A DNA stretch of 64,000 nucleotides from Dimorphilus gyrociliatus (lineage: Eukaryota > Animalia > Annelida), in the NCBI GenBank assembly GCA_904063045.1, contig CAJFCJ010000002.1:1758422-1822421 (forward strand), in the 5' to 3' direction. Of the stretch, positions 49,454 through 61,052 are shown in pieces. Each line of letters begins with the position of its first letter. Position 1 is the stretch's first letter. A model generated the notes under the pieces. The model saw only the letters and a list, made by a program, of their open reading frames with translations, was not told the origin of the DNA and searched no databases. A program made the translations under genes and the position numbers.

Positions 49454-50473
49454 TTAACGATTTGTTTGAGTAATAATAATTTTAATAACTTTATTTTTAC
49501 TTGTACAATTATATGTAAATATCTTCAATATTTCTGCTCTAAAATTATCGCTAAATAGACAATATAAAATAAAATTAATAGATGAATTTGAAATATTGAA
49601 GATTGAAGCTATCAATTCCGCAACTTCCCAACTGCTATTTGGTATTTGATTATCGCTTTGTAAGCATGGATCTTTTTTTCTGCTCCATCCAGCTATTACT
49701 AGTATGCACTTTGGCAAATTTAAAATCATATAGATAATTACAATAGCAATTAATAATATTGTTAGCGATCTGTTGTGGCTATTTGCCCTAGCGGCATGAG
49801 TAGAGCTGACTATTGCTATTCTTACTTTTGTAGCAATTCTTAATTGACGAATTAAGAGAAAATTAATGATGGCTAGAGCACTCCACGGTATAATATACCA
49901 AAAAATTGGCAATAAGAACGAATGAAAAGCACATATATAACCTTTTAAGTTATCTTTAAGGTTGGCTGTAACAAGTTTTCCAATAATAGGTAGATCCCAC
50001 GTTTGCAAGTCATACGCAATCCAGTTAGGAAAAGTTAATACTAACGGAAAGCCAATAATAAAGGTAATAATACACACATGATTGAATTTACTTAATGTTC
50101 TTGAGTAGAAGGGTGATTTGACGGCAAGGTATCTTTGAATAGTTAAAGCAACTATAACTAGACTTGTTATTCCAAGCGATGTCCAATGAATGGGATTTAT
50201 GTATAGAGAAAGATAAGGTTCAATTTGAAATGTTACTCTTAAATATTCAAAATCGCTTAAGTTTAATAAATAAACTCTATAACGAATTATCGATGTACAA
50301 AGAACCATTAAATCAGAAGACACCAGTATTTGAAGATATCTTGTTGTTATTTGACTTCTTAAACTTTTTCGACATAAGATAGAGATCGTTAAAATATTCC
50401 CAAAAAGACCAATAGCTGTTAAAATTGCTATTGCAATCCGAACACGATTAACTATGTCGACGTAGTAAGTCAT
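49454..50473 (-). CDS. Class A peptide GPCR (FMRFamide/sex-peptide-receptor-like), intronless
   Basis: Seven hydrophobic segments, GN in TM1, SD in TM2, QRY at the TM3 end, NSSINFILYC in TM7. ATG taken at 50473. Confidence 0.85.
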   Translation of the reverse strand: MTYYVDIVNRVRIAIAILTAIGLFGNILTISILCRKSLRSQITTRYLQILVSSDLMVLCTSIIRYRVYLLNLSDFEYLRVTFQIEPYLSLYINPIHWTSLGITSLVIVALTIQRYLAVKSPFYSRTLSKFNHVCIITFIIGFPLVLTFPNWIAYDLQTWDLPIIGKLVTANLKDNLKGYICAFHSFLLPIFWYIIPWSALAIINFLLIRQLRIATKVRIAIVSSTHAARANSHNRSLTILLIAIVIIYMILNLPKCILVIAGWSRKKDPCLQSDNQIPNSSWEVAELIASIFNISNSSINFILYCLFSDNFRAEILKIFTYNCTSKNKVIKIIITQTNR

Positions 50474-51253
50474 TTCGTTGACTGAGAGGAGAAAAATGTT
50501 GTTCTTTTTTCTTACTTTCCACACAACTTACGACTTATGACGTCTATTTGCCAACTTCAGATAAGAAATTATGTACAATAAGTTTTTATTCAAATTATTC
50601 CTTAGAACGCACTTAGGCTACTCGTATACTCGTATCTCTTCTATTTCTTTACAATTGAATATTCAAAATTCAGTCCAATATATTTATAAGGAGAGATAGT
50701 TTTAATTTGTTTCCTAATTTCGTTATATGATAAACATGGAACATAATTTGAATTGTTGTCAATTAACGGGATTTATTATAAAGTAAATTATATGAATGGA
50801 AAATAATAGTAGATATTTTTATAAATAACTTTACGTTTTTATTGTCGAACTTTATGACTTTTGACAAGAGATTTACACTTATTGCACACGTTGGCTAGAG
50901 ATAAAAGTCCTTTAACAATAATTTTTAAAGGTGAAATTTTTAATTAATATATAACAGCCGTTTCTCCGAATACTTCTTTGCAAGTTTTACTTAACTTTTT
51001 GCTTAAATTCGACTATTTACAAATTTTGTCAACCGTGAAACTTCATAAAAGTTCTCATTGGTTCTTCCTGCGGTACTAATATCACGTGATCACAATAATC
51101 AGCAGACAACATTGTACCGTATTTATCAACTTTTGTTTCATTTTGATACAGCAAAGTAAGTCTGTTTCAAGCTTTTTTCCCTTTTGATCAGTTAGTGATT
51201 TTAATTTTATTTACTTGTCCATTATTTGCAGAACGAAATAAAGGTTTCAAACA

Positions 51254-54200
51254 ATGGAGAATTCTAAGGTTCCAACTATTCCTACTTTGGATGAAATTTT
51301 GAAAGATTTTCCTCCAGGACCATTAGATGTTTATCGCAAAAAAGCATCTTTCGATTGGAAAAAACTAAAATTACATATTCACGGTGAAGATTACCTTAAA
51401 TTTCAGGTGAGATACGTTTACTTTTGTAAATATTTTAAGCAAGTTTTATTTTGTCCCAGTAAATGAACCTTGAAAAAAGTTTTTGTTACCTTATTGAATC
51501 TCAAGGTCGTGATAGGGGGCAAGATAAAGATTTCTTGAAATTTTATTGTCAATATCAGTAGTTTTTGTATTGATAAAATTGACAAAAAAAGAGTAATTAA
51601 TATATTGTTATCGAGTTAACTAATATAGTTTATATCTTTAAAAGCGAAAAAGTAGAGCTTTTAAAAGTTCTATAGATGGAATGTAAATATTTATTAATTA
51701 CTCTAAATTTAAATGCATTTTTAAGGAAAAATATAAACTCAAAGGAAAATATGCATATAATTTATAGTATGCTGTTTGGAATGCCTTGGAAAATGATCCC
51801 ATTTTTTACCATTCGGATAAATCAATAAGTTTAGAAGAAGAACGTGAAAGAACGTTTAATCGAGTGAAGCGTCTCTTCGAATATGATTTTGGTAATAGCG
51901 AAGCAGCGGGTAATTGTGGGCCAATGGCTGGTCATGCATCAGTATGCACACTGTTGCCTGTAGACGGGTCTATGAATACGCGATATGGATTGAGTGTCTT
52001 TGTACGTAAACTTATTTCTCTTTTTTTTCAAAACAGTACACTATTTGGAATGCTCTTGAAAATGATCCAACATTCACTCGCAATATTGGAAGTTTAACCT
52101 TAGAACAAATCCGAAAAAATTCAGACAATCATGTTAAACGATATTTTGAATATGATTTTTTAAATGATGACGATATTGCCAACAATCCACTTCTGGTTGT
52201 CGCTCACATTGGAGCATTATCTAGCTATGATCCAAGTTCCTATGCTAAAAATATGCTCAATAGAGAGGTTTCCATTCTCAATAAATTAAGCCAATTAATT
52301 TCCATTTAAATGCAATAAAAAGCATCTTATTTTTTGAGTAATTTTATATATTCATATCAAAATCTAATTCAGATGTTCGGAAGAACAACTAGAACTGCTG
52401 GTTCCGAAAGACATAAAGAATATTTTGATGATGTTACAAACTTTCAAGTAAAAATATATTTCTTTAATTTATTTTCGCTAGATTGACATTAATTTTTTTC
52501 ATAGAAATTTGGATGTTTTGCTTTAACCGAATTGAGCCACGGATCGAATACAAAAGCAATGAGAACTACTGCAACGTATGATCCATCTACTGAACAGTTC
52601 ATTCTAAATACGCCGGATATCGAAGCAACGAAAATTTGGGTAGGAAATCTTGGTAAAACAGCTACTCACGCCGTTGTCTATGCCCAATTAATTACTCCAG
52701 ATGGAGTGAATCACGGACTTCATTCATTTGTTGTTAAAGTTCGAGATGAAAGAACACTTCTGGCTGTTCCTGGCGTTATTGTTGGTGATATGGGAGAGAA
52801 AATAGGCTTAAATGGTATTGATAACGGATTTGTAGCTTTCAATAATGTACGAATCCCAAGAGAAAACCTTTTAAATAAAACTGGAGACGTTACTTCAGAG
52901 GGAAAGTATGTTACTCCTTTCAAAGATCCAAATAAAAGATTCGGAGCTTCCCTTGGCGCCTTATCGGGTAGATTATTATTGTTATGATACTATTGTCTCA
53001 GTTAACTTTACATGGTTTTCTTCCAGGTGGCCGTGTTACAATTAACTGTATTTCCGTAACTAACTTGAAATTAGCTATCTGTATCGCTATTAGATATTCA
53101 TGTACAAGGCGTCAATTCGGACCCAAAGAGGGTGTTGAATTGCCTGTAATCGAATATCAAATGCAACAATGGCGATTAATACCGTATTTAGCGGCAGCTT
53201 ACGTTTTGGATGTATTTTCACGTCAATTTTTCATGAATTTTGTTGAATTACAAATTGGATTAATGGCTGGAGATAAATCTGATAGGCAAGATAATTTGGG
53301 AAAAGAATTACATGCTCTATCGTGCGCGTCTAAGGCAGTTCATAGTTGGATTGCAAGAGATGCAATTCAAGAATGTAGAGAAGCTTGTGGAGGTCACGGT
53401 TATTTTAAAAGTAAGAAATTGATCATTTTATTTGAGTAATATCAATTTTTTAAATATCATTTTTCAAATTTATAGTTAACAGATTAGGGGAATTGAGAAA
53501 CGATCATGATCCAAATTGTACTTATGAAGGAGACAACAATGTTATTTTACAGCAAACTAGTAACTACGTTTTGGCAAGCTATGGAGCAGTGAAAAGAGGT
53601 ACAATACTGTCAACTCCCCTGAACGCCTGCGAACCTTTGAATAGATTCAAAACTATTTTGACGTCTACATTCAGACGTAAATCTGATACTGTATCATTAA
53701 ATGAAGTTATAGAGGCTTATGAATGGCTAATATGCTATTTAAGCGAACAGAGCGCCGAAAAGTTGACTTTGGAAAGCAAATCAAATGATTCCTTTACGGC
53801 GAGAAACAATAGTCAAGTCTACTTTTGCCGAACCCTTGCAATTGTAACTTTTGAACACCATCTTTTGAATCGAGTCCGTGAATTTGTTAACAACGAAACC
53901 GAGGATAGTCTCAAACCCGTTTTGTCGCAAATGCTAACACTATTTTCCGCCTGGATTCTGGAAAAACACTTGTCTACTTTATACGAAGGAGGCTATTGCT
54001 CTGGTAAAGACCTAGCAACCTGCGTAAGAAAGACGGTCGTGGATCTTAGCCATAACCTCAAGAACGAAGCTGCAGCACTTGTTGATGCTATCGCTCCACC
54101 AGATTTTGTTCTAAATTCCCCAATTGGCTCTTCCAATGGAGAAGTAAGTTAACTTATAAATTAGTATAAACTCTTATTGATAATAAATTTCGTTAAAAGA

Positions 54201-54322
54201 TTTACAAGAACCTATACAGTGCAATGATTCAAACTCCTGGAGCTTTGGAAAGAACAAATTGGTGGAGAGAATTTTCCAATAAACCAAACGTAGGAAGTTT
54301 GAGACCGGTTTCTAAACTCTGA
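51254..54322 (+). CDS. ACOX3: Peroxisomal acyl-CoA oxidase 3 (pristanoyl-CoA oxidase), multi-exon with duplicated exon 2
   Basis: [78 protein letters not shown]; ends ...PVSKL* (PTS1). Confidence 0.94.
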
Positions 54323-54904: not shown

Positions 54905-57900
54905 ATGAGCGAGCTGTTGAACGAGTTAAAGAACGCACAGACAAGGAGAGGAGGTAAAGGAGAAGCTGGAAGAGGAAGTAGAATAGGAGGTCAAAGAGGA
55001 GGTCAAAGAGGAGGTCAAAGAGGAGGTGGAAAGGAAGGGGGAGAAGAAGGTGGAAATGAGTCTCACAGAGCAAACAGAAGAGAGGCTGTAAGTCCAAATG
55101 ACAGGGAGGGAGGATATCGAAAAGAGAATGGTGGTCCTAGATGGGGGCGCAAGGATTTTGAAACCTTCAAGGAGAGTAATGACGCCGATATGGTAGCAAT
55201 GACTATAAATGGAAAGCAAAGCATCCTCCACGAACTGTTCGAGAGAGAAACTGTACTAGTAGTAAAATTGACAGTGTTAATAGCCGAAAAGTGCGCCTTT
55301 CCGGGAGTCAAGAAATCTATACTTAAACGTTTTACAGAATGTTCAAAGTCCAAGGTATGATGCAGTTCTCTTTACAAAGAAAACTTTCCAATAATAATCC
55401 ATAATGCTTTTTCTTATTACAGAAATATCTTATAAATAAAATTCGTAATATGAGTACAATTACGAATGAAAGAGATGTTTGTGAATTTCTACTAAACATA
55501 TGCAGTATATTTAAAACATGCTGCAAACTGTTTTCAGACTGCTGGGAAGATCTGGAAGATTTATGGGAATGTGTTATGAGCACTTGTTTATTTCTAAAAA
55601 TGAAATTTCGATGGCAAGATGAGAATGAATTACTGGTTACTGTAGAGAATATTAACGAGGTGAATATATTTCATCTTCTTGAGATTATTACAAAATACTT
55701 TCAATATTTTAAATAATAATTGTGTTTCATAGATGAAAAATTTATTTCGAGCTGGAGCTGAAGTTGTTTCAAATGAAGCTCCTAAATCTCGCTTTAAATC
55801 AACAATAAACTATGATAAAGAACCTGAAGATGATATTTCTAATTATTCCGAATATCCTGCGGCAAAGGAATTACAACGAGACTTTACTCCATTCATTAGA
55901 CCGATTAAAAAGCACGGCGCTTATTTAAACGAGAAACAATACTTGGACATTTATTATAGACTGATGAGAGAGGATTTAATAAGACCTCTTCGAGAAGGAA
56001 TTAAAAAGCTTATCGAAGAAGATTCAAGTCTCGGAGTTTATAAAAATGTTAAAGTAAACGAAATTTTTGTTGATAAACGTGGCATCTCAAGGTTAGCAAA
56101 ATTTGACAAACTAAAAAGAATTAACTGGGAAACTTCGAAACGTCTACTTCCGGGATCATTGATATGTTTATCATCCGATAATTTCAATAGTCTGCATTTT
56201 GCAACAGTTGGAAGTCGGGATAAAAGTATTATTTCCAGTGGTTACGTAACAATAAAATTTGAGAAGAGTGAAGAGCTTGATTTGCAAAAAACCTTTGTCA
56301 TGGTTGAAAGTGAAGGATATTTTGAATCATATAGATATATTTTAAAAGGTTTACAGGAAATGCAAACAGAAGACATACCGTTCAAAGAAGAGATTATTTA
56401 TTGCAGAAAAGACCATAGACTTCCTAACTATATTAAAAATTCTCCTTATTGGGATCTTACCTGCTTGATTCCAAACGATTCTTCTACTTCAAAGGAATTG
56501 AAATCAACTTTGACTAATTTTAATGTTCTTGGTACACAAAGCTGGCCGAATAATGAACAATTAAACTTGGACACTTCTCAATTCGAAGCAATTCGATCTG
56601 TATTCAGAAATAGAATAACCTTAATCCAAGGTCCACCTGGAGCAGGTAAAACTTACGTTGGGCTGAAATTGGCAAATATTCTATTGAAAAACAAACAAAA
56701 ATGGAAAGCTGAGAATAATAGTCCTATTTTAGTTGTTGCTTATACTAATCATGCTTTGGATCAATTTTTGGAAGGAGTATCTTCATTTGAGGAAAGTATC
56801 GTTAGGTTTGGTTCAAGATGTAATTCTGAATCGCTGAAGAAGTTTAGTTTACAAGAAAAAAGAAGGGAAACACTATCAAATTCATCTTCATGGGCAAAAA
56901 AAATAAAACACCGAAGATATGAAGCGTTCCGGGATAGAGAAGAGGCTAAATGTCAATTAGAGATCTTGAAAAACATGAAAAAAAAATTTACTAATGGCTT
57001 TGCAAATATAGAAGATTTTGATGTTGAAGAAAGTTGGTTATTACACGAAATAGAAACTTCATATAGTAATTATCAGGTTAATCCCTTTGTGCAGTGGCTA
57101 GTTTTAGAACCAGAATCTATGATGGAAACCATGCAACAAAATGCAGAAAGTGGCCTTTCGTCAAAACCAGATAACAAAGAACAGAATCTGTCAGCCGAAG
57201 AGCAGAAATTTCAAAACGAAGAAGACGTTGACATCTCTTTGCAAGAAATAGAAATGGAACATCGAGACATAGAAGCAGATGTTAAACAAATAGAAGAAGT
57301 TCGTAAAACAATTGAAGATAAAGAGAATATCAACATAAACATAGACTTAGAAAACGATGAAGGATGGACAATGAAAATTGATATGAAAAAACTCAGAAAC
57401 AGAGTACAAAAAGAGTTTACTTCAACTGATATCATGGACAAAACGACAGTCGACAATATTTACAGCATTCAAAAACTGTCGGGAAAGGAACGATGGCAAC
57501 TTTATAGATACTGGGTACAACAGCAAATCAGAAGACTAGATAAGAAGATAAATGCATATGGAAATAAATATCAAATTTTATTCGACGAACTATGTGACTA
57601 CTCTGATCAAATTGATATGGAAACAGCTAAGAATTCATCTGTAATTGCTATGACAACAACATGCGCTTCTAGGCTTCGACATTTGATTAAACAGATAAAG
57701 CCTACAATTGTACTTTTTGAGGAAGCTGCAGAAGTTTTCGAATCACATGTTCTCACTTCATTATCTAAAGATACTCAGCATTTAATTCTCATTGGCGATC
57801 ATCTTCAATTGAAACCTAAACCAATTGTTTATGATCTCGCTATCAACTATAATCTAGAGATTTCTTTGTTTGAGAGACTTGTTGAAAATGATTTGCCCCA

Positions 57901-60349
57901 CGTTACACTCGGCGTTCAAAGACGAATGAGACCAGAAGTCTCTTATCTCATTCAAGATATATATCCAGATCTACAGGATCATTTTAGTACAAAGAATAGG
58001 GATGGGATCAAAGGAGTGGATAAAAGCGTTCTTTTCTTTAATCATAAAGAGAACGAAGATATATTATTGGATGATGGACATAGTAAGCGCAACACATTCG
58101 AGGCGCAAATGATAACCGGTCTCGTTAAGTATCTACGTCAACAGAATTACGATGGAGAAAGGATTACGATCATTACTCCCTACATGGGACAAGTAGTACT
58201 TATAAAGAAATGCATGAAGGCGCCCAATGATAAAGTGAAACAAATATTCAACGGTGTTCGAGTGGTAGCCATAGACAATTATCAAGGAGAAGAAAATGAT
58301 ATTATCATCTTATCCCTTGTCCGATGTAATACCCGAGGAATTACGGGATTTGTGACTATACAGAATCGAATTTGCGTAATGTTGTCAAGGGCAAAATATG
58401 GAATGTTTATCTTTGGTAATCTTGATATGTTCGCCTCTAAATCTGATTTATGGAAAAAAATCAAACAAAGATTAGAAGAAAAAGATCAAATTGTCAACTC
58501 ATTAAAACTGGCATGTCAAAATCACAATATTGGCACGGAGGTCAAAAAACCATCAGACTTTTTAAAAGTCCCAGAAGGTGGATGTTCTAAAAAATGTGGA
58601 CAGAGATTACCATGTGGACATATTTGTCTATTGTCATGTCATGCCTTTGACCCCGAACATAAAAAGTATCCCTGTCAACAACCATGCAGCAAAATTCTTT
58701 GCGATCTTGATCACAAATGTCCAAAACTATGTTTCCAATCCTGTCCACCTTGTATGAAAAAAGTGAAGAAATATATTGCTGATTGTGGACATACAGACGA
58801 AGTTCCTTGCTCAGTACCAGAATCAAACTGGAACTGTCGTAGTAAGTGTACAAAAAGTCTGAATTGTGGTCATAAATGCGAAAGAAAATGCTATGAAAAA
58901 TGTGTCTGCTTTGTTCCTTGCAAAAAAAGTCTATTAGGATGCGATCATGTATGTCAGGGCAACTGTTCTACATGCTTTAATGGTAAAATGCACGTTCCTT
59001 GTAATAAACCATGCAAAAGAATTCTTGTATGTGGACATGAATGTGAAGATAGGTGCACTAAGGAGTGCCCACCATGCACACGAGATTGTGACATGAAATG
59101 CATCCACTCGGAATGCAGTCTGAAATGTGGAGACCCATGCTATATTTGTAAAATGGAATGTCCTTTAAAGTGCGAACACCAGATTTGCGAAAAAAAATGT
59201 GGTGAAGCATGCAGTATTAAACCCTGCACAAGACGTTGCAAGAAGACTCTTTCTTGTAAACACCGTTGCATAGGTTTATGTGGTGATGAATGTCCGCCAA
59301 TTTGTGGACAATGCAATCCTTCCGTCTATGAAATATTCTTTGGAGTGGAGGATGAAAATTCTACATTTGTCTTTTTGCCCGATTGTCAACATTGTATTGA
59401 ATCCGAATCAATGGATGAATGGATGATGAGAGAAAGTAACAAAGTAGGCCTAAAGTCTTGTCCCAAGTGCAGCACAATTGTTAGAAAATGTACAAGATAT
59501 AATAATATAATTAATCGACAATTAAAGAATGTCGAAGAAGCCAAGAAAAAAATGATTAAGCCTATTAGTGAAGAAGATGTAAAGAAAAACAAAGTGCTGA
59601 ATGATTATCTTCAACTCCACTCGAAAAAAAACAGCTTTTTCCCTATAAGTTTACTTCGTCTTCAAACCTATATAACTTCAAGTATTGAACAGATGAAGGA
59701 ACATGGAACAAATGAAAGGGATCTGGCTAAAATCGAAACTTTAATATCGATCAGCAAAAAGCTTATTGAATTCGCAAATAATCGATATATCAGTTCCGAT
59801 AGTAAAATGGAATTGGACAATATTTGTAAATGGTTGATGAATATTGAAACTAGCTTTAGTGATCAACAAGAAAGTGACTTGAACAATGCTTTAGACAGAA
59901 TGAAGATTTTCCTGATAATTGACTGTTTTAATCGCCAAACAACACAACTAGAGTCAATTTTGAACCAATGTCTGGACTATCAGGCTTTGTCCGTATATAA
60001 TAAAATGCTATTGGGAGCCTATGTGAAGTCTAGTGATTTAGATTATCTATTTAAAGCACTAAAAGTTGTGGGAGATAAGGAGGGCATGGACCTGAATGAA
60101 GAATTAACAATGAAAAAGAAAATGGCTATAATAAGAGCTATGGACATACCTAGAGGACATTGGTTTAAATGTCCTAAAGGTCATATATATGCAATTGGCG
60201 AGTGCGGTGGAGCAGTAGAAGAGTCTAGATGCCCTGATTGTAAATCAATAATCGGAGGAACAGGTCATAGATTAGCGGAAGGTAATGCACATATTGGAAG
60301 TTTTGATGGATCAGCTATGTCCTCATATGATACAGCAGTAGCAGGTTAG
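54905..60349 (+). CDS. ZNFX1: NFX1-type zinc-finger SF1 RNA helicase with C-terminal RZ finger, 3 exons (~1767 aa)
   Basis: Exons 54905-55354, 55423-55659 and 55733-60349. YLDIYYRLMREDLIRPLREG, KRLLPGSLICLS, QGPPGAGKT, FEEAAEV, LILIGDHLQLKP, DNYQGEE, a run of NF-X1 Cys/His fingers, and the RZ finger GHWFKCPKGHIYAIGECGG..CPDC. Confidence 0.95.
54985..55027 (+). repeat. 12-nt coding tandem repeat (AGGAGGTCAAAG x3.5) encoding GGQR repeats
   Basis: Read directly within ZNFX1 exon 1. Confidence 0.9.
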
Positions 60350-60958: not shown

Positions 60959-61052
60959 ACTTGTTGATTGCTATCGCCCCACCAGACTTTGTCCTGAATT
61001 CACAATTGACTCTTCCAAGTAAGTTAATTTTTTAATTAGTACAAACTTTTAA
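60959..61052 (+). pseudogene. Decayed copy of the ACOX3 penultimate-exon end plus the following intron start
   Basis: Aligns by eye to 54077-54172 (acttgttgat.gctatcgc.ccaccaga.tttgt.ct.aatt...tcttccaa...gtaagttaa...aattagta.aaact) with small indels. Confidence 0.85.

Follow-up and report, generated by a model that had tools for sequence, protein, structure and literature searches.

Exons 3I and 3II (3a/3b) of the vertebrate acyl-CoA oxidase gene ACOX1 are a textbook example of a tandem-duplicated, mutually exclusive exon pair, and exon 3 of ACOX1 encodes approximately residues 90-143 of the enzyme. In the classic case of exclusion by steric interference, competition picks one of the two exons, and the dead-end product containing both is not the main species. 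A structure of human ACOX1 'isoform 2' is on record (7q84). In the general scheme for such pairs, among which ACOX1 3a/3b is included, exon duplication is followed by the enforcement of the choice by steric interference, decay or regulators (PMC5224494).

Here we report an analysis of the ACOX3 gene of the annelid worm Dimorphilus gyrociliatus, which lies in a window of 64,000 nucleotides (the whole stretch of DNA analysed) and in which exon 2 is present as two adjacent copies, designated 2a and 2b. Vertebrate ACOX1 likewise has its duplicated exon in the N-terminal alpha-domain of an acyl-CoA oxidase, but the worm pair concerns a different paralogue and another exon, and an ACOX1 message uses one of its two exons, whereas the assembled RNA of worm ACOX3 holds both. 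The worm pair also resembles the type represented by alpha-tropomyosin exons 2/3 in the crowding of the donor of the first copy and the branch and acceptor of the second, with a gap of 35 nt that stays unremoved; in contrast to that type, it is the dead-end product that dominates the assembled worm RNA. For U2AF1 exons 3/Ab and similar pairs, the message with two copies also has a premature stop and is removed by nonsense-mediated decay. In that type, however, splicing removes the intron that separates the copies, and endogenous RNA rarely contains the two-exon form, whereas in the worm the 35 nt stay in what is the main assembled message.

Results

The assignment of the gene to ACOX3, made in an earlier note on this DNA, was supported by its domains, its named relatives and its C-terminus. 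The spliced open reading frame (ORF) with either copy of exon 2 alone has 698/699 codons, is open, and ends in ...RPVSKL, a predicted peroxisomal terminus of the PTS1 type. A Pfam search located the acyl-CoA dehydrogenase middle domain (PF02770, E 2.7e-13) on exon 4 and the ACOX C-terminal domain (PF01756, E 8.5e-38) on exon 6, acyl-CoA oxidases in the PDB matched the worm protein at E 1e-40, and the best full-length matches, at 55-60% identity, were all named ACOX3 or ACOX3-like. When single exons were searched against Pfam and PDB sequences, there was no match because the exons are too short. In the tree, the worm protein was placed inside the lophotrochozoan ACOX3 group (Lingula, Lineus and molluscs) by a fork that has a support of 81/84 and is drawn open, and its branch was long, at 0.83 vs 0.3-0.4 for other lophotrochozoans (2-2.7 times longer). 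Judged from its sequence, the locus is an intact ACOX3 orthologue.

The RNA evidence consists of the assembled contigs of one run, X3, of unknown stage, in which each depth is the mean over a contig and minority paths are lost. All features of the gene are on the + strand. A 5' UTR intron of 76 nt with GT..AG ends (51156..51231) is removed in an X3 contig at the joint 51155->51232 (depth 481). Exon 1 (51232..51406) was identified from X3 and X1 contigs with a check of the ORF and junction, and its coding part runs from the ATG at 51254 to 51406 (51 codons), ending in phase 0 before the donor GTGAGA. It is followed by intron 1 (51407..51767), which is the longest of the gene with 361 nt and is spliced at the joint 51404->51766 (cut +2). 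Downstream of the two copies of exon 2, intron 2 (52268..52372, 105 nt) is also removed in an X3 contig and leads to exon 3 (52373..52447; 25 codons, phase 0 at both ends), exon 4 (52505..52967; 72-79% identity to vertebrate ACOX3), exon 5 (53027..53410), exon 6 (53476..54143) and the coding part of exon 7 (54200..54322), which carries the terminal SKL and the stop codon; exons 3 and 5 were delimited by RNA contigs and the ORF check.

Copy 2a (51768..52001; 234 nt, 78 codons), which is joined to exon 1 in RNA, has ...tttatAG upstream and GTACGT downstream. Copy 2b (52037..52267; 231 nt, 77 codons) has T8-CAAAACAG upstream and GTTTCC downstream, the latter being a weak donor that is nevertheless used in RNA (joint 52265->52371, cut +2, depth 768). 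Each copy is in phase 0 at both ends, AG and GT are present at all four borders, and the earlier description of two adjacent homologous exons with splice sites of their own was exact in coordinates and translations. The two copies are homologous by BLASTP (E 8e-18, 44% identity over 68 residues), and their similarity lies in the first 41 codons, with a pN of 0.31 vs a pS of 0.82; in the C halves, the copies agree only at the random level (nucleotide identity of 0.31/0.42/0.25 at the three codon positions). The pair is best described as a tandem exon duplication that is old, because synonymous sites are saturated (pS 0.82-0.88 between the copies), and the splice signals flanking the gap are intact despite this saturated divergence. 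Homology, matching phase, splice signals and open frames were all confirmed for the tandem duplication of exon 2 as first proposed.

In the brachiopod Lingula, the nemertean Lineus and the molluscs Lottia and Pecten, exon 2 of ACOX3 is single and not duplicated, and the borders of the worm copies match those of the single exon 2 of Lingula, Lineus and Lottia. By this comparison the duplication is lineage-specific, and, because the four outgroup ACOX3 genes are without it, it originated independently of the ACOX1 pair 3I/3II, as had been suspected. With rat ACOX1 as the anchor, worm exon 2 corresponds to approximately residues 30-106 of ACOX1. When a genomic ACOX3 locus of an annelid was sought, the best representatives were those of fishes, arthropods and a flatworm.

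The intron-like gap between the copies (52002..52036), delimited by the sequence and an X3 contig, reads GTACGT ... T8 CAAAACAG with a GC content of 26%, and its T8 run (52021..52028) is the pyrimidine tract of the 2b acceptor. With its 35 nt, it is indeed shorter than other introns of the gene, of which the seven supported by RNA have 56-361 nt, and the median intron of the worm genome has 66 nt (PMC7854359). The only branch-like motif in the gap is a putative CTTAT at a distance of approximately 12 nt from the 2a donor. Such a distance is below the known requirement of metazoan spliceosomes. The distance from donor to branch is predicted to be too short for splicing, as in steric hindrance, and the block earlier proposed between the 2a donor and the 2b acceptor fits with the RNA seen, in which the gap is unspliced vs six neighbouring introns of 56-105 nt that are removed. 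The 2a frame stays open through the gap, and a TAA at 52007-52009 interrupts the 2b frame. The 27 nt at 52010-52036, including the T8 run, are the only stretch in which both frames are open.

We then come to the messages found in RNA, in which the joint of exon 1 to 2a had a depth of 450 vs 481 for exon 1 (approximately 94%, X3). Unspliced intron 1 had a depth of approximately 23, and from these values the joining of exon 1 to 2b would account for a few percent at most. An X3 contig of 2,707 nt with a depth of 768 had all other introns removed and was continuous from 51766 to 52265, with 0 mismatches and 0 gaps, and the joint of 2b to exon 3 was present in the same contig. The joints of exon 1 to 2b, 2a to exon 3 and 2a to 2b were not found among the assembled X3 contigs, nor was a message with exactly one copy, although contigs of one run leave minority forms possible. 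The earlier note had held that the copies are mutually exclusive and give two enzymes from one locus. The X3 message has instead the order exon 1, 2a, gap, 2b and exon 3, and this out-of-frame message with two copies is the main assembled form, so that the two-enzyme switch at ACOX3 is not borne out by the X3 RNA contigs. The contrary case considered in that note, in which transcripts routinely include both copies by splicing the 35-nt intron, holds in that both are present together, but not in that the gap is kept rather than spliced.

The composite exon of 2a, gap and 2b has 500 nt. Because the gap is retained, the assembled message is out of frame, and a TAA stop is reached in the 2a frame at 52095..52097 (ORF 51786..52097), which limits the ORF to 160 codons from the ATG in exon 1 and is 172 nt upstream of the next junction. 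We consider that 2a and 2b are an either/or pair, for which the usual outcome in the sample is the unproductive exon with two copies and for which productive messages are a minority or belong to unsampled stages; we give this explanation a probability of approximately 0.45.

As a separate observation, an X1 contig ends two letters past exon 1, and these letters (TA) are shared by 2a and 2b, which may hint at branching to both. Its depth at that point is 4, so that it may be a mere end of coverage, and it is not counted as evidence. A search for the junction pattern of exon 1 with TA[T/C] in JGI metagenome contigs gave 0 matches.

The conservation of each copy was evaluated for the 35 conserved columns in the outgroup alignment, 22 in the N half and 13 in the C half. 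Copy 2a retains 22 of the 35, with 18/22 in the N half, including the RE.TF.R helix, and 4/13 in the C half. Copy 2b, the more canonical copy overall, retains 24, with 15/22 in the N half, in which RE.TF.R is lost, and 9/13 in the C half, in which the NP...YD.S..AK..LN motif is retained. Similarly, a profile of 52 homologues gave 36.8 bits for 2b and 33.5 bits for 2a over the whole exon, and 15.3 vs 26.8 bits, respectively, for the N half. The residues retained by 2a alone are five in the N half and none in the C half, and those retained by 2b alone are two and five (Fisher p 0.028). On this alignment, the conservation of the copies is complementary, with the N-half residues being kept in 2a and the C-half motif in 2b. 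Both copies are open, with pN in the N halves well below pS, and each has lost different universally conserved residues. The C half of 2a is strongly diverged and rich in Gly/Ala/Ser, with a GC content of 0.49 that is coding-like and not intron-like, and P, D, S and L are still present in it at the corresponding positions. The strong divergence of the C halves noted earlier is real, being at the random level, but the suggestion that it reflects different specificities is not upheld, as the loss of outgroup-conserved residues is one-sided.

Two candidate explanations for the structure of the copies were tried and rejected. The C half of 2a is not a piece of exon 4: the best BLAST match had an E of 0.008 (exon 4 region of several homologues), the comparison with the worm's own exon 4 gave an E of 3.6, the profile score there was only 1.7 bits, and the residual homology at P, D, S and L is collinear with exon 2 instead. 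As for a hybrid exon consisting of the N half of 2a and the C half of 2b, GGTAAT is present after FEYDF in 2a, but there is no matching AG in 2b; the sole in-frame AG would remove the conserved NP segment, and such a joint is absent from the RNA.

The complementary conservation could also be accounted for by the presence of both copies in one protein, an ACOX3 with a tandem repeat inside it that takes its N-half helices from 2a and its C-half motif from 2b, with the degenerate inner halves forming a loop insertion of approximately 80-90 residues. Such a protein, which is possible but somewhat unlikely, could arise if the gap were inefficiently removed as an ultra-short intron, giving 776 residues, or if the composite exon were normal and the frame were carried across the T8 run, because of either a former T9 (a 501-nt in-frame exon) that lost 1 nt recently in the strain or slippage at U8. 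It would fit the RNA without unseen junctions at exon 1 or exon 3; the direct joining of 2a to 2b, with the gap left out, maintains the frame (777 codons, counting the stop), the T8 run is within the only 27 nt open in both frames, the C half of 2a is linker-like in its composition, and the crossover point (FEY-DF / L..D) is in a variable, indel-bearing stretch of the outgroup alignment. However, the removal of the gap must occur in less than half of the messages, because the assembler kept it unspliced, and an intron of 35 nt, in which donor and branch are approximately 12 nt apart, is under the known minimum for metazoans. With respect to the frame, no indel was found at the T8 run in the X3 contig, T8 being the reading in the genomic sequence as well as in the Illumina RNA contig. 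Furthermore, the residues kept in the N half of 2b (15/22) and the C half of 2a (P, D, S and L) are unexpected in an idle insertion, and it would take a coincidence for a GT...polyY-AG to stay intact within a coding linker when divergence has reached saturation.

A more specific form of this idea is that the 500-nt exon is normal and U8 is a recoding site, by a -1 ribosomal slip or polymerase slippage, so that a 160-residue fragment and a tandem-repeat oxidase of approximately 788 residues are made at a set ratio, again with the N-half helices from 2a and the C-half motif from 2b. A slippery heptamer of the X_XXY_YYZ form, U_UUU_UUU, is present at 52022-52028 in the 2a frame, and a -1 shift there reads TCA AAA CAG TAC, which is the 2b frame. 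A stimulatory fold 3' of the U run was sought and not found at 52029-52120 (MFE -10.2 kcal/mol, z -0.5) or 51885-52110 (z +1.4), which also weighs against carriage of the frame in a two-copy protein, and we consider recoding extremely improbable. An RNA structure that stimulates frameshifting or guides the splice choice was rejected, as no fold beyond those of shuffles was found; the AT-rich inverted repeats among intron 1, the gap and intron 2 are 70-81% complementary and not distinguished from chance.

It is quite unlikely, in our estimation, that one copy makes the enzyme and the other is a by-product. This could take the form of 2b working via rare splicing from exon 1, with 2a being an exonised relic, and the end-to-end alignment of 2b with the outgroup exon 2 (41-48% identity, E 1e-16 to 1e-18) and the loss of most of the conserved C-half motif in 2a are in its favour. 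Alternatively, 2a with its own donor could be productive and the downstream donor of 2b a regulated unproductive choice that tunes the ACOX3 output, as an alternative 5' site coupled to decay; exon 1 joins 2a nearly always, and the premature stop of the composite, with its distance to the next junction, is a classic layout for coupling to decay. The N half of 2a is, however, more canonical than that of 2b, with five residues in 2a alone, and, because silent sites are saturated, a relic could not have kept them. The GC-rich C half of 2a is likewise similar to coding sequence and unlike a decayed intron, and 2b has retained its C half and open frame, so that it is not a mere poison extension.

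It is also conceivable, although very unlikely, that the gene was recently disabled in the lineage and that full-length ACOX3 is no longer produced, the cause being the shrinkage of the gap below a spliceable length in genome compaction or the loss of 1 nt from the T run. The main message being out of frame and the long branch of the worm protein are consistent with this. Moreover, no full-length or 575-residue worm ACOX3 was among the matches listed from a collection of 5.8 billion proteins in profile searches with two scaffolds, although either form would rank within the lists under local scoring, and a query of 2a with its read-through found no protein of 60-190 residues. Database absence is weak evidence, however, as the neighbouring intronless receptor gene of the window is also not on record. 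In addition, the message is abundant, the downstream part of the gene, of approximately 570 codons, is open and highly conserved, as exemplified by exon 4, and SKL is retained, so that the disabling would need to be very recent.

Discussion

The either/or pair could operate as follows. The worm may splice its short introns by pairing the nearest sites, in which case the donor of exon 1 would take the first acceptor, that of 2a, and the acceptor of exon 3 would take the nearest donor, that of 2b, while the 2a donor and the 2b acceptor, being 35 nt apart, could not form an intron. The resulting message with the 500-nt composite and its 160-codon ORF should be a target of nonsense-mediated decay. 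The full-length enzyme would come from minority messages with one copy, by the joining of the 2a donor to exon 3 or of exon 1 to the 2b acceptor, or such messages may be made in unsampled stages or tissues. We infer a full-length enzyme because both copies appear to be constrained at the protein level and the frame of the 570 downstream codons is unbroken; as no single-copy message was seen, the productive step itself is purely our inference. Two observations sit less easily with the either/or pair. An unproductive main message is odd for a conserved enzyme, and the complementary conservation fits one protein with two copies better than two stand-alone isoforms, because each single-copy isoform would be without a universally conserved motif.

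Among the main routes by which alternative protein forms arise is tandem exon duplication, and worm ACOX3 represents a second case of a duplicated exon in an acyl-CoA oxidase, with an origin of its own. It calls for caution with the many supposed mutually exclusive pairs of this genome, since exon anatomy alone does not reveal the splice choice. In a genome of short introns, with the copies 35 nt apart and nearest sites being paired, the default may be an unspliceable, out-of-frame exon with two copies and not a clean switch. If confirmed, this gene would be a useful natural case for learning whether new exon pairs become productive and by what steps, or, as the other possibility, an example of an enzyme with complementary decay of a duplicated segment.

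Structure and identity of ACOX3

The locus lies in a compact, AT-rich genome (GC about 0.32), and the gene, as judged from its encoded protein, is an acyl-CoA oxidase, with the Acyl-CoA_dh_M domain in exon 4 and the ACOX C-terminal domain in exon 6. Acyl-CoA oxidases of solved structure matched the worm protein with an E of 1e-40, and the nearest full-length proteins, which were 55-60% identical, were every one named ACOX3. In a maximum-likelihood tree, the worm protein was grouped with the ACOX3 of Lingula, Lineus and molluscs on a long branch (0.83 changes per site, compared with 0.3-0.4 in Lingula, Lineus and one Logan transcript), although slow evolution has been described for the Dimorphilus genome (PMC7854359). 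A relaxation or shift of the constraint on the enzyme may lie behind this. The worm's own ACOX3 was not found among proteins of 390 to 1,240 residues in the protein collection, and by local scoring it would have ranked among the listed hits had it been there.

The exon-intron structure, on the plus strand, was determined from the spliced contigs of X3, a sequencing run, with a frame check on the exons. A 5' UTR intron of 76 nt precedes E1, which has its ATG at 51254 and extends to 51406, and intron 1 (361 nt), the exon 2 region (copy 2a, a 35-nt gap and copy 2b) and intron 2 (105 nt) are followed by E3 (52373-52447), E4 (52505-52967), E5 (53027-53410), E6 (53476-54143) and E7 (54200 to the SKL-stop at 54322). 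With a single copy of exon 2, ACOX3 has 698 or 699 residues and exon 4 begins at about residue 154, the same as in homologues. The gene is flanked upstream by an intronless 7-TM-receptor-like ORF on the minus strand (49454-50524, 356 codons), of which the 339-residue ATG form was absent from the gene collection, and downstream by a single-exon ORF of 1,538 codons (55733-60349) for a ZNFX1/NFX1-type helicase zinc-finger protein. Beyond the latter, 24 residues encoded at 60961-61032 resemble ACOX3 C-terminal residues 637-660 (54% identity, tblastn E 0.09), which would agree, weakly on its own, with the relic of a collapsed ACOX3-ZNFX1 duplicate proposed in a separate note.

An old, lineage-specific duplication of exon 2

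The two copies proved to be as first described, in coordinates (2a, 51768-52001; 2b, 52037-52267; both on the plus strand), in translation and as homologous phase-0 exons, with a BLASTP E of 8e-18, phase 0 at all ends and AG or GT at all four borders. The gap between them (52002-52036) reads GTACGT ... T8 CAAAACAG, with a GC of 26%, like an intron. The duplication is old, with silent sites at saturation (pS 0.82-0.88); over the first 41 codons, replacement change was 0.31, and nucleotide identity between the C halves was at the random level. It is also lineage-specific relative to the brachiopod, nemertean and two mollusc ACOX3 genes: Lingula anatina, Lineus longissimus, Lottia gigantea and Pecten maximus have one exon 2 each, with no second copy found anywhere in any of the four genes, and the exon borders in the first three are those of the worm. 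In Pecten maximus, the equivalents of exons 2 and 3 form one exon of 102 codons (2204-2509 of that locus); the intron after exon 2, missing there, is kept in the other three.

In other genes, the choice between exons can be directed by pairing of inverted repeats. Two sets of AT-rich inverted repeats, neither distinguished from chance level, were observed here. One lies in intron 1 (51584-51604) and the gap (52007-52027), with 81% complementarity over 21 nt; the other lies in the 3' part of intron 1 (51696-51762) and in intron 2 (52293-52343), with 71-77% over 22-28 nt.

The assembled message holds both copies

In two run searches, the exon 2 region was covered by X3 only. X3 behaves as an RNA-seq assembly, with intron-free contigs at a depth of about 768, intron 1 at a depth of 23 and an Illumina adapter at one loose contig end. 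A 2,707-nt X3 contig runs from past the 3' end through E7 back to E3, crosses the joint of the 2b donor with E3 and spans 51766-52265 with zero gaps or mismatches, so that 2b, the 35 nt with the T8 run and 2a are read in one piece. The joint of E1 with the 2a acceptor was found in a short contig at a depth of 450, the E1 contig being at 481 and the unspliced intron at 23; these depths leave a few percent at most for E1-2b. The joints E1-2b, 2a-E3 and 2a-2b were all absent from the joints table of the X3 contigs. Assembled contigs attest presence, not absence, and minority junctions below the level of the unspliced gap may go unassembled; where paths fork, the assembler retains the one with more coverage, so that all three joints are rarer in X3 than the unspliced gap. 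The mutually exclusive use put forward in the earlier note was thus not borne out in the dominant assembled message, which joins E1 to 2a and 2b to E3, retains the gap and is out of frame.

In two further X3 contigs, the match to the locus ends at 51265 or begins at 52270, which is the third base of intron 2, and their 255-letter continuations had no match within the 64-kb window; chimeric paths in the assembly, or joins to a different locus, may account for them. Within 51240-54143, four ACOX3 exon pieces were found at an identity of at least 99% in X1, a coral metatranscriptome, and in X2, a marine metatranscriptome, pieces at about 96-98%, one of them spliced from E6 to E7, with exon 2 outside the coverage of both. 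Both samples therefore contain the worm, or a close relative of it, and ACOX3 is expressed there.

Routes to a productive message

The composite exon of 2a, gap and 2b (500 nt) shifts the frame, and the ORF from the E1 ATG continues through 2a and the gap to a stop at 52095-52097 (160 codons). As the 2b frame is shut upstream by a TAA (52007-52009), 2b can be reached in frame by three routes only: splicing to 52037; removal of the 35 nt, which places 2a and 2b in frame in a protein of 776 residues; or a frame change within 52010-52036, the stretch with the T8 run. Nearest-site pairing across short introns, together with a gap too short to be spliced, would yield the two-copy exon as the default product; the remaining ACOX3 introns are 56-361 nt. 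The median intron genome-wide is 66 nt (PMC7854359).

Since ACOX3 has retained both copies and 570 codons downstream of them, a productive message would have to exist; that the gene was recently disabled, which the out-of-frame message might suggest, is accordingly the reading we rank last and consider very improbable. We favor, at a probability of roughly 0.45, an either/or pair in which the productive messages, with a single copy, are in the minority or stage-restricted. Ranked second, and unlikely, is a protein holding both copies, made either by removing the 35 nt at low efficiency or by way of the T run: 35 nt stands against the known length limits of the spliceosome, the T8 run is read alike in genome and RNA, and a stimulatory fold was looked for and none was found, although this reading best accounts for the complementary conservation of the copies.

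This conservation was evaluated with a profile of 52 homologues from which the worm was left out. Whole copies scored 36.8 bits (2b) and 33.5 bits (2a), and N halves alone 26.8 bits (2a) and 15.3 bits (2b), the C half in context adding about 7 bits in 2a and about 21 bits in 2b. Among 35 columns with a conservation of 60% or more across 34 outgroups, 2a kept 18 of 22 in the N half and 4 of 13 in the C half, and 2b kept 15 of 22 and 9 of 13. In the RE.TF.R..L helix, 2a alone kept E, T, F, R and L, and in NP...YD.S..AK..LN, 2b alone kept N, Y, A, K and N (Fisher p 0.028 for the copy-specific pattern between halves). Each copy has lost a different motif conserved across animal ACOX3. The C half of 2a is rich in Gly/Ala/Ser, and its GC of 0.49, which ranks within the top 1.1% among windows of 111 nt, is like that of the GC-richest coding part of ACOX3 and unlike that of its introns. 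On this sequence evidence, neither copy has the appearance of a neutral relic. The third-ranked reading, which seems doubtful indeed, is that only one copy works and that the other is a by-product or part of a decay-coupled splice choice.

Relation to known duplicated exons

By a rat ACOX1 anchor, in which residue 3 of worm exon 4 aligns to residue 134, worm exon 2 corresponds to about residues 30-106 of ACOX1. ACOX1 exon 3 encodes about residues 90-143. The closest known case, vertebrate ACOX1 3I/3II, is among the published duplicated exon pairs (PMC5224494), with a structure of human isoform 2 in the PDB (7q84); the worm pair differs from it in lying in another paralogue and in another exon. 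The steric layout is like that of alpha-tropomyosin exons 2/3, and double inclusion leads to a stop codon as in U2AF1 exons 3/Ab (PMC5224494). Taken together, the ACOX3 pair belongs to a known class, tandem exon duplication, and its output is somewhat odd: the double form, rare in the alpha-tropomyosin and U2AF1 pairs, dominates the assembled RNA of the worm gene.
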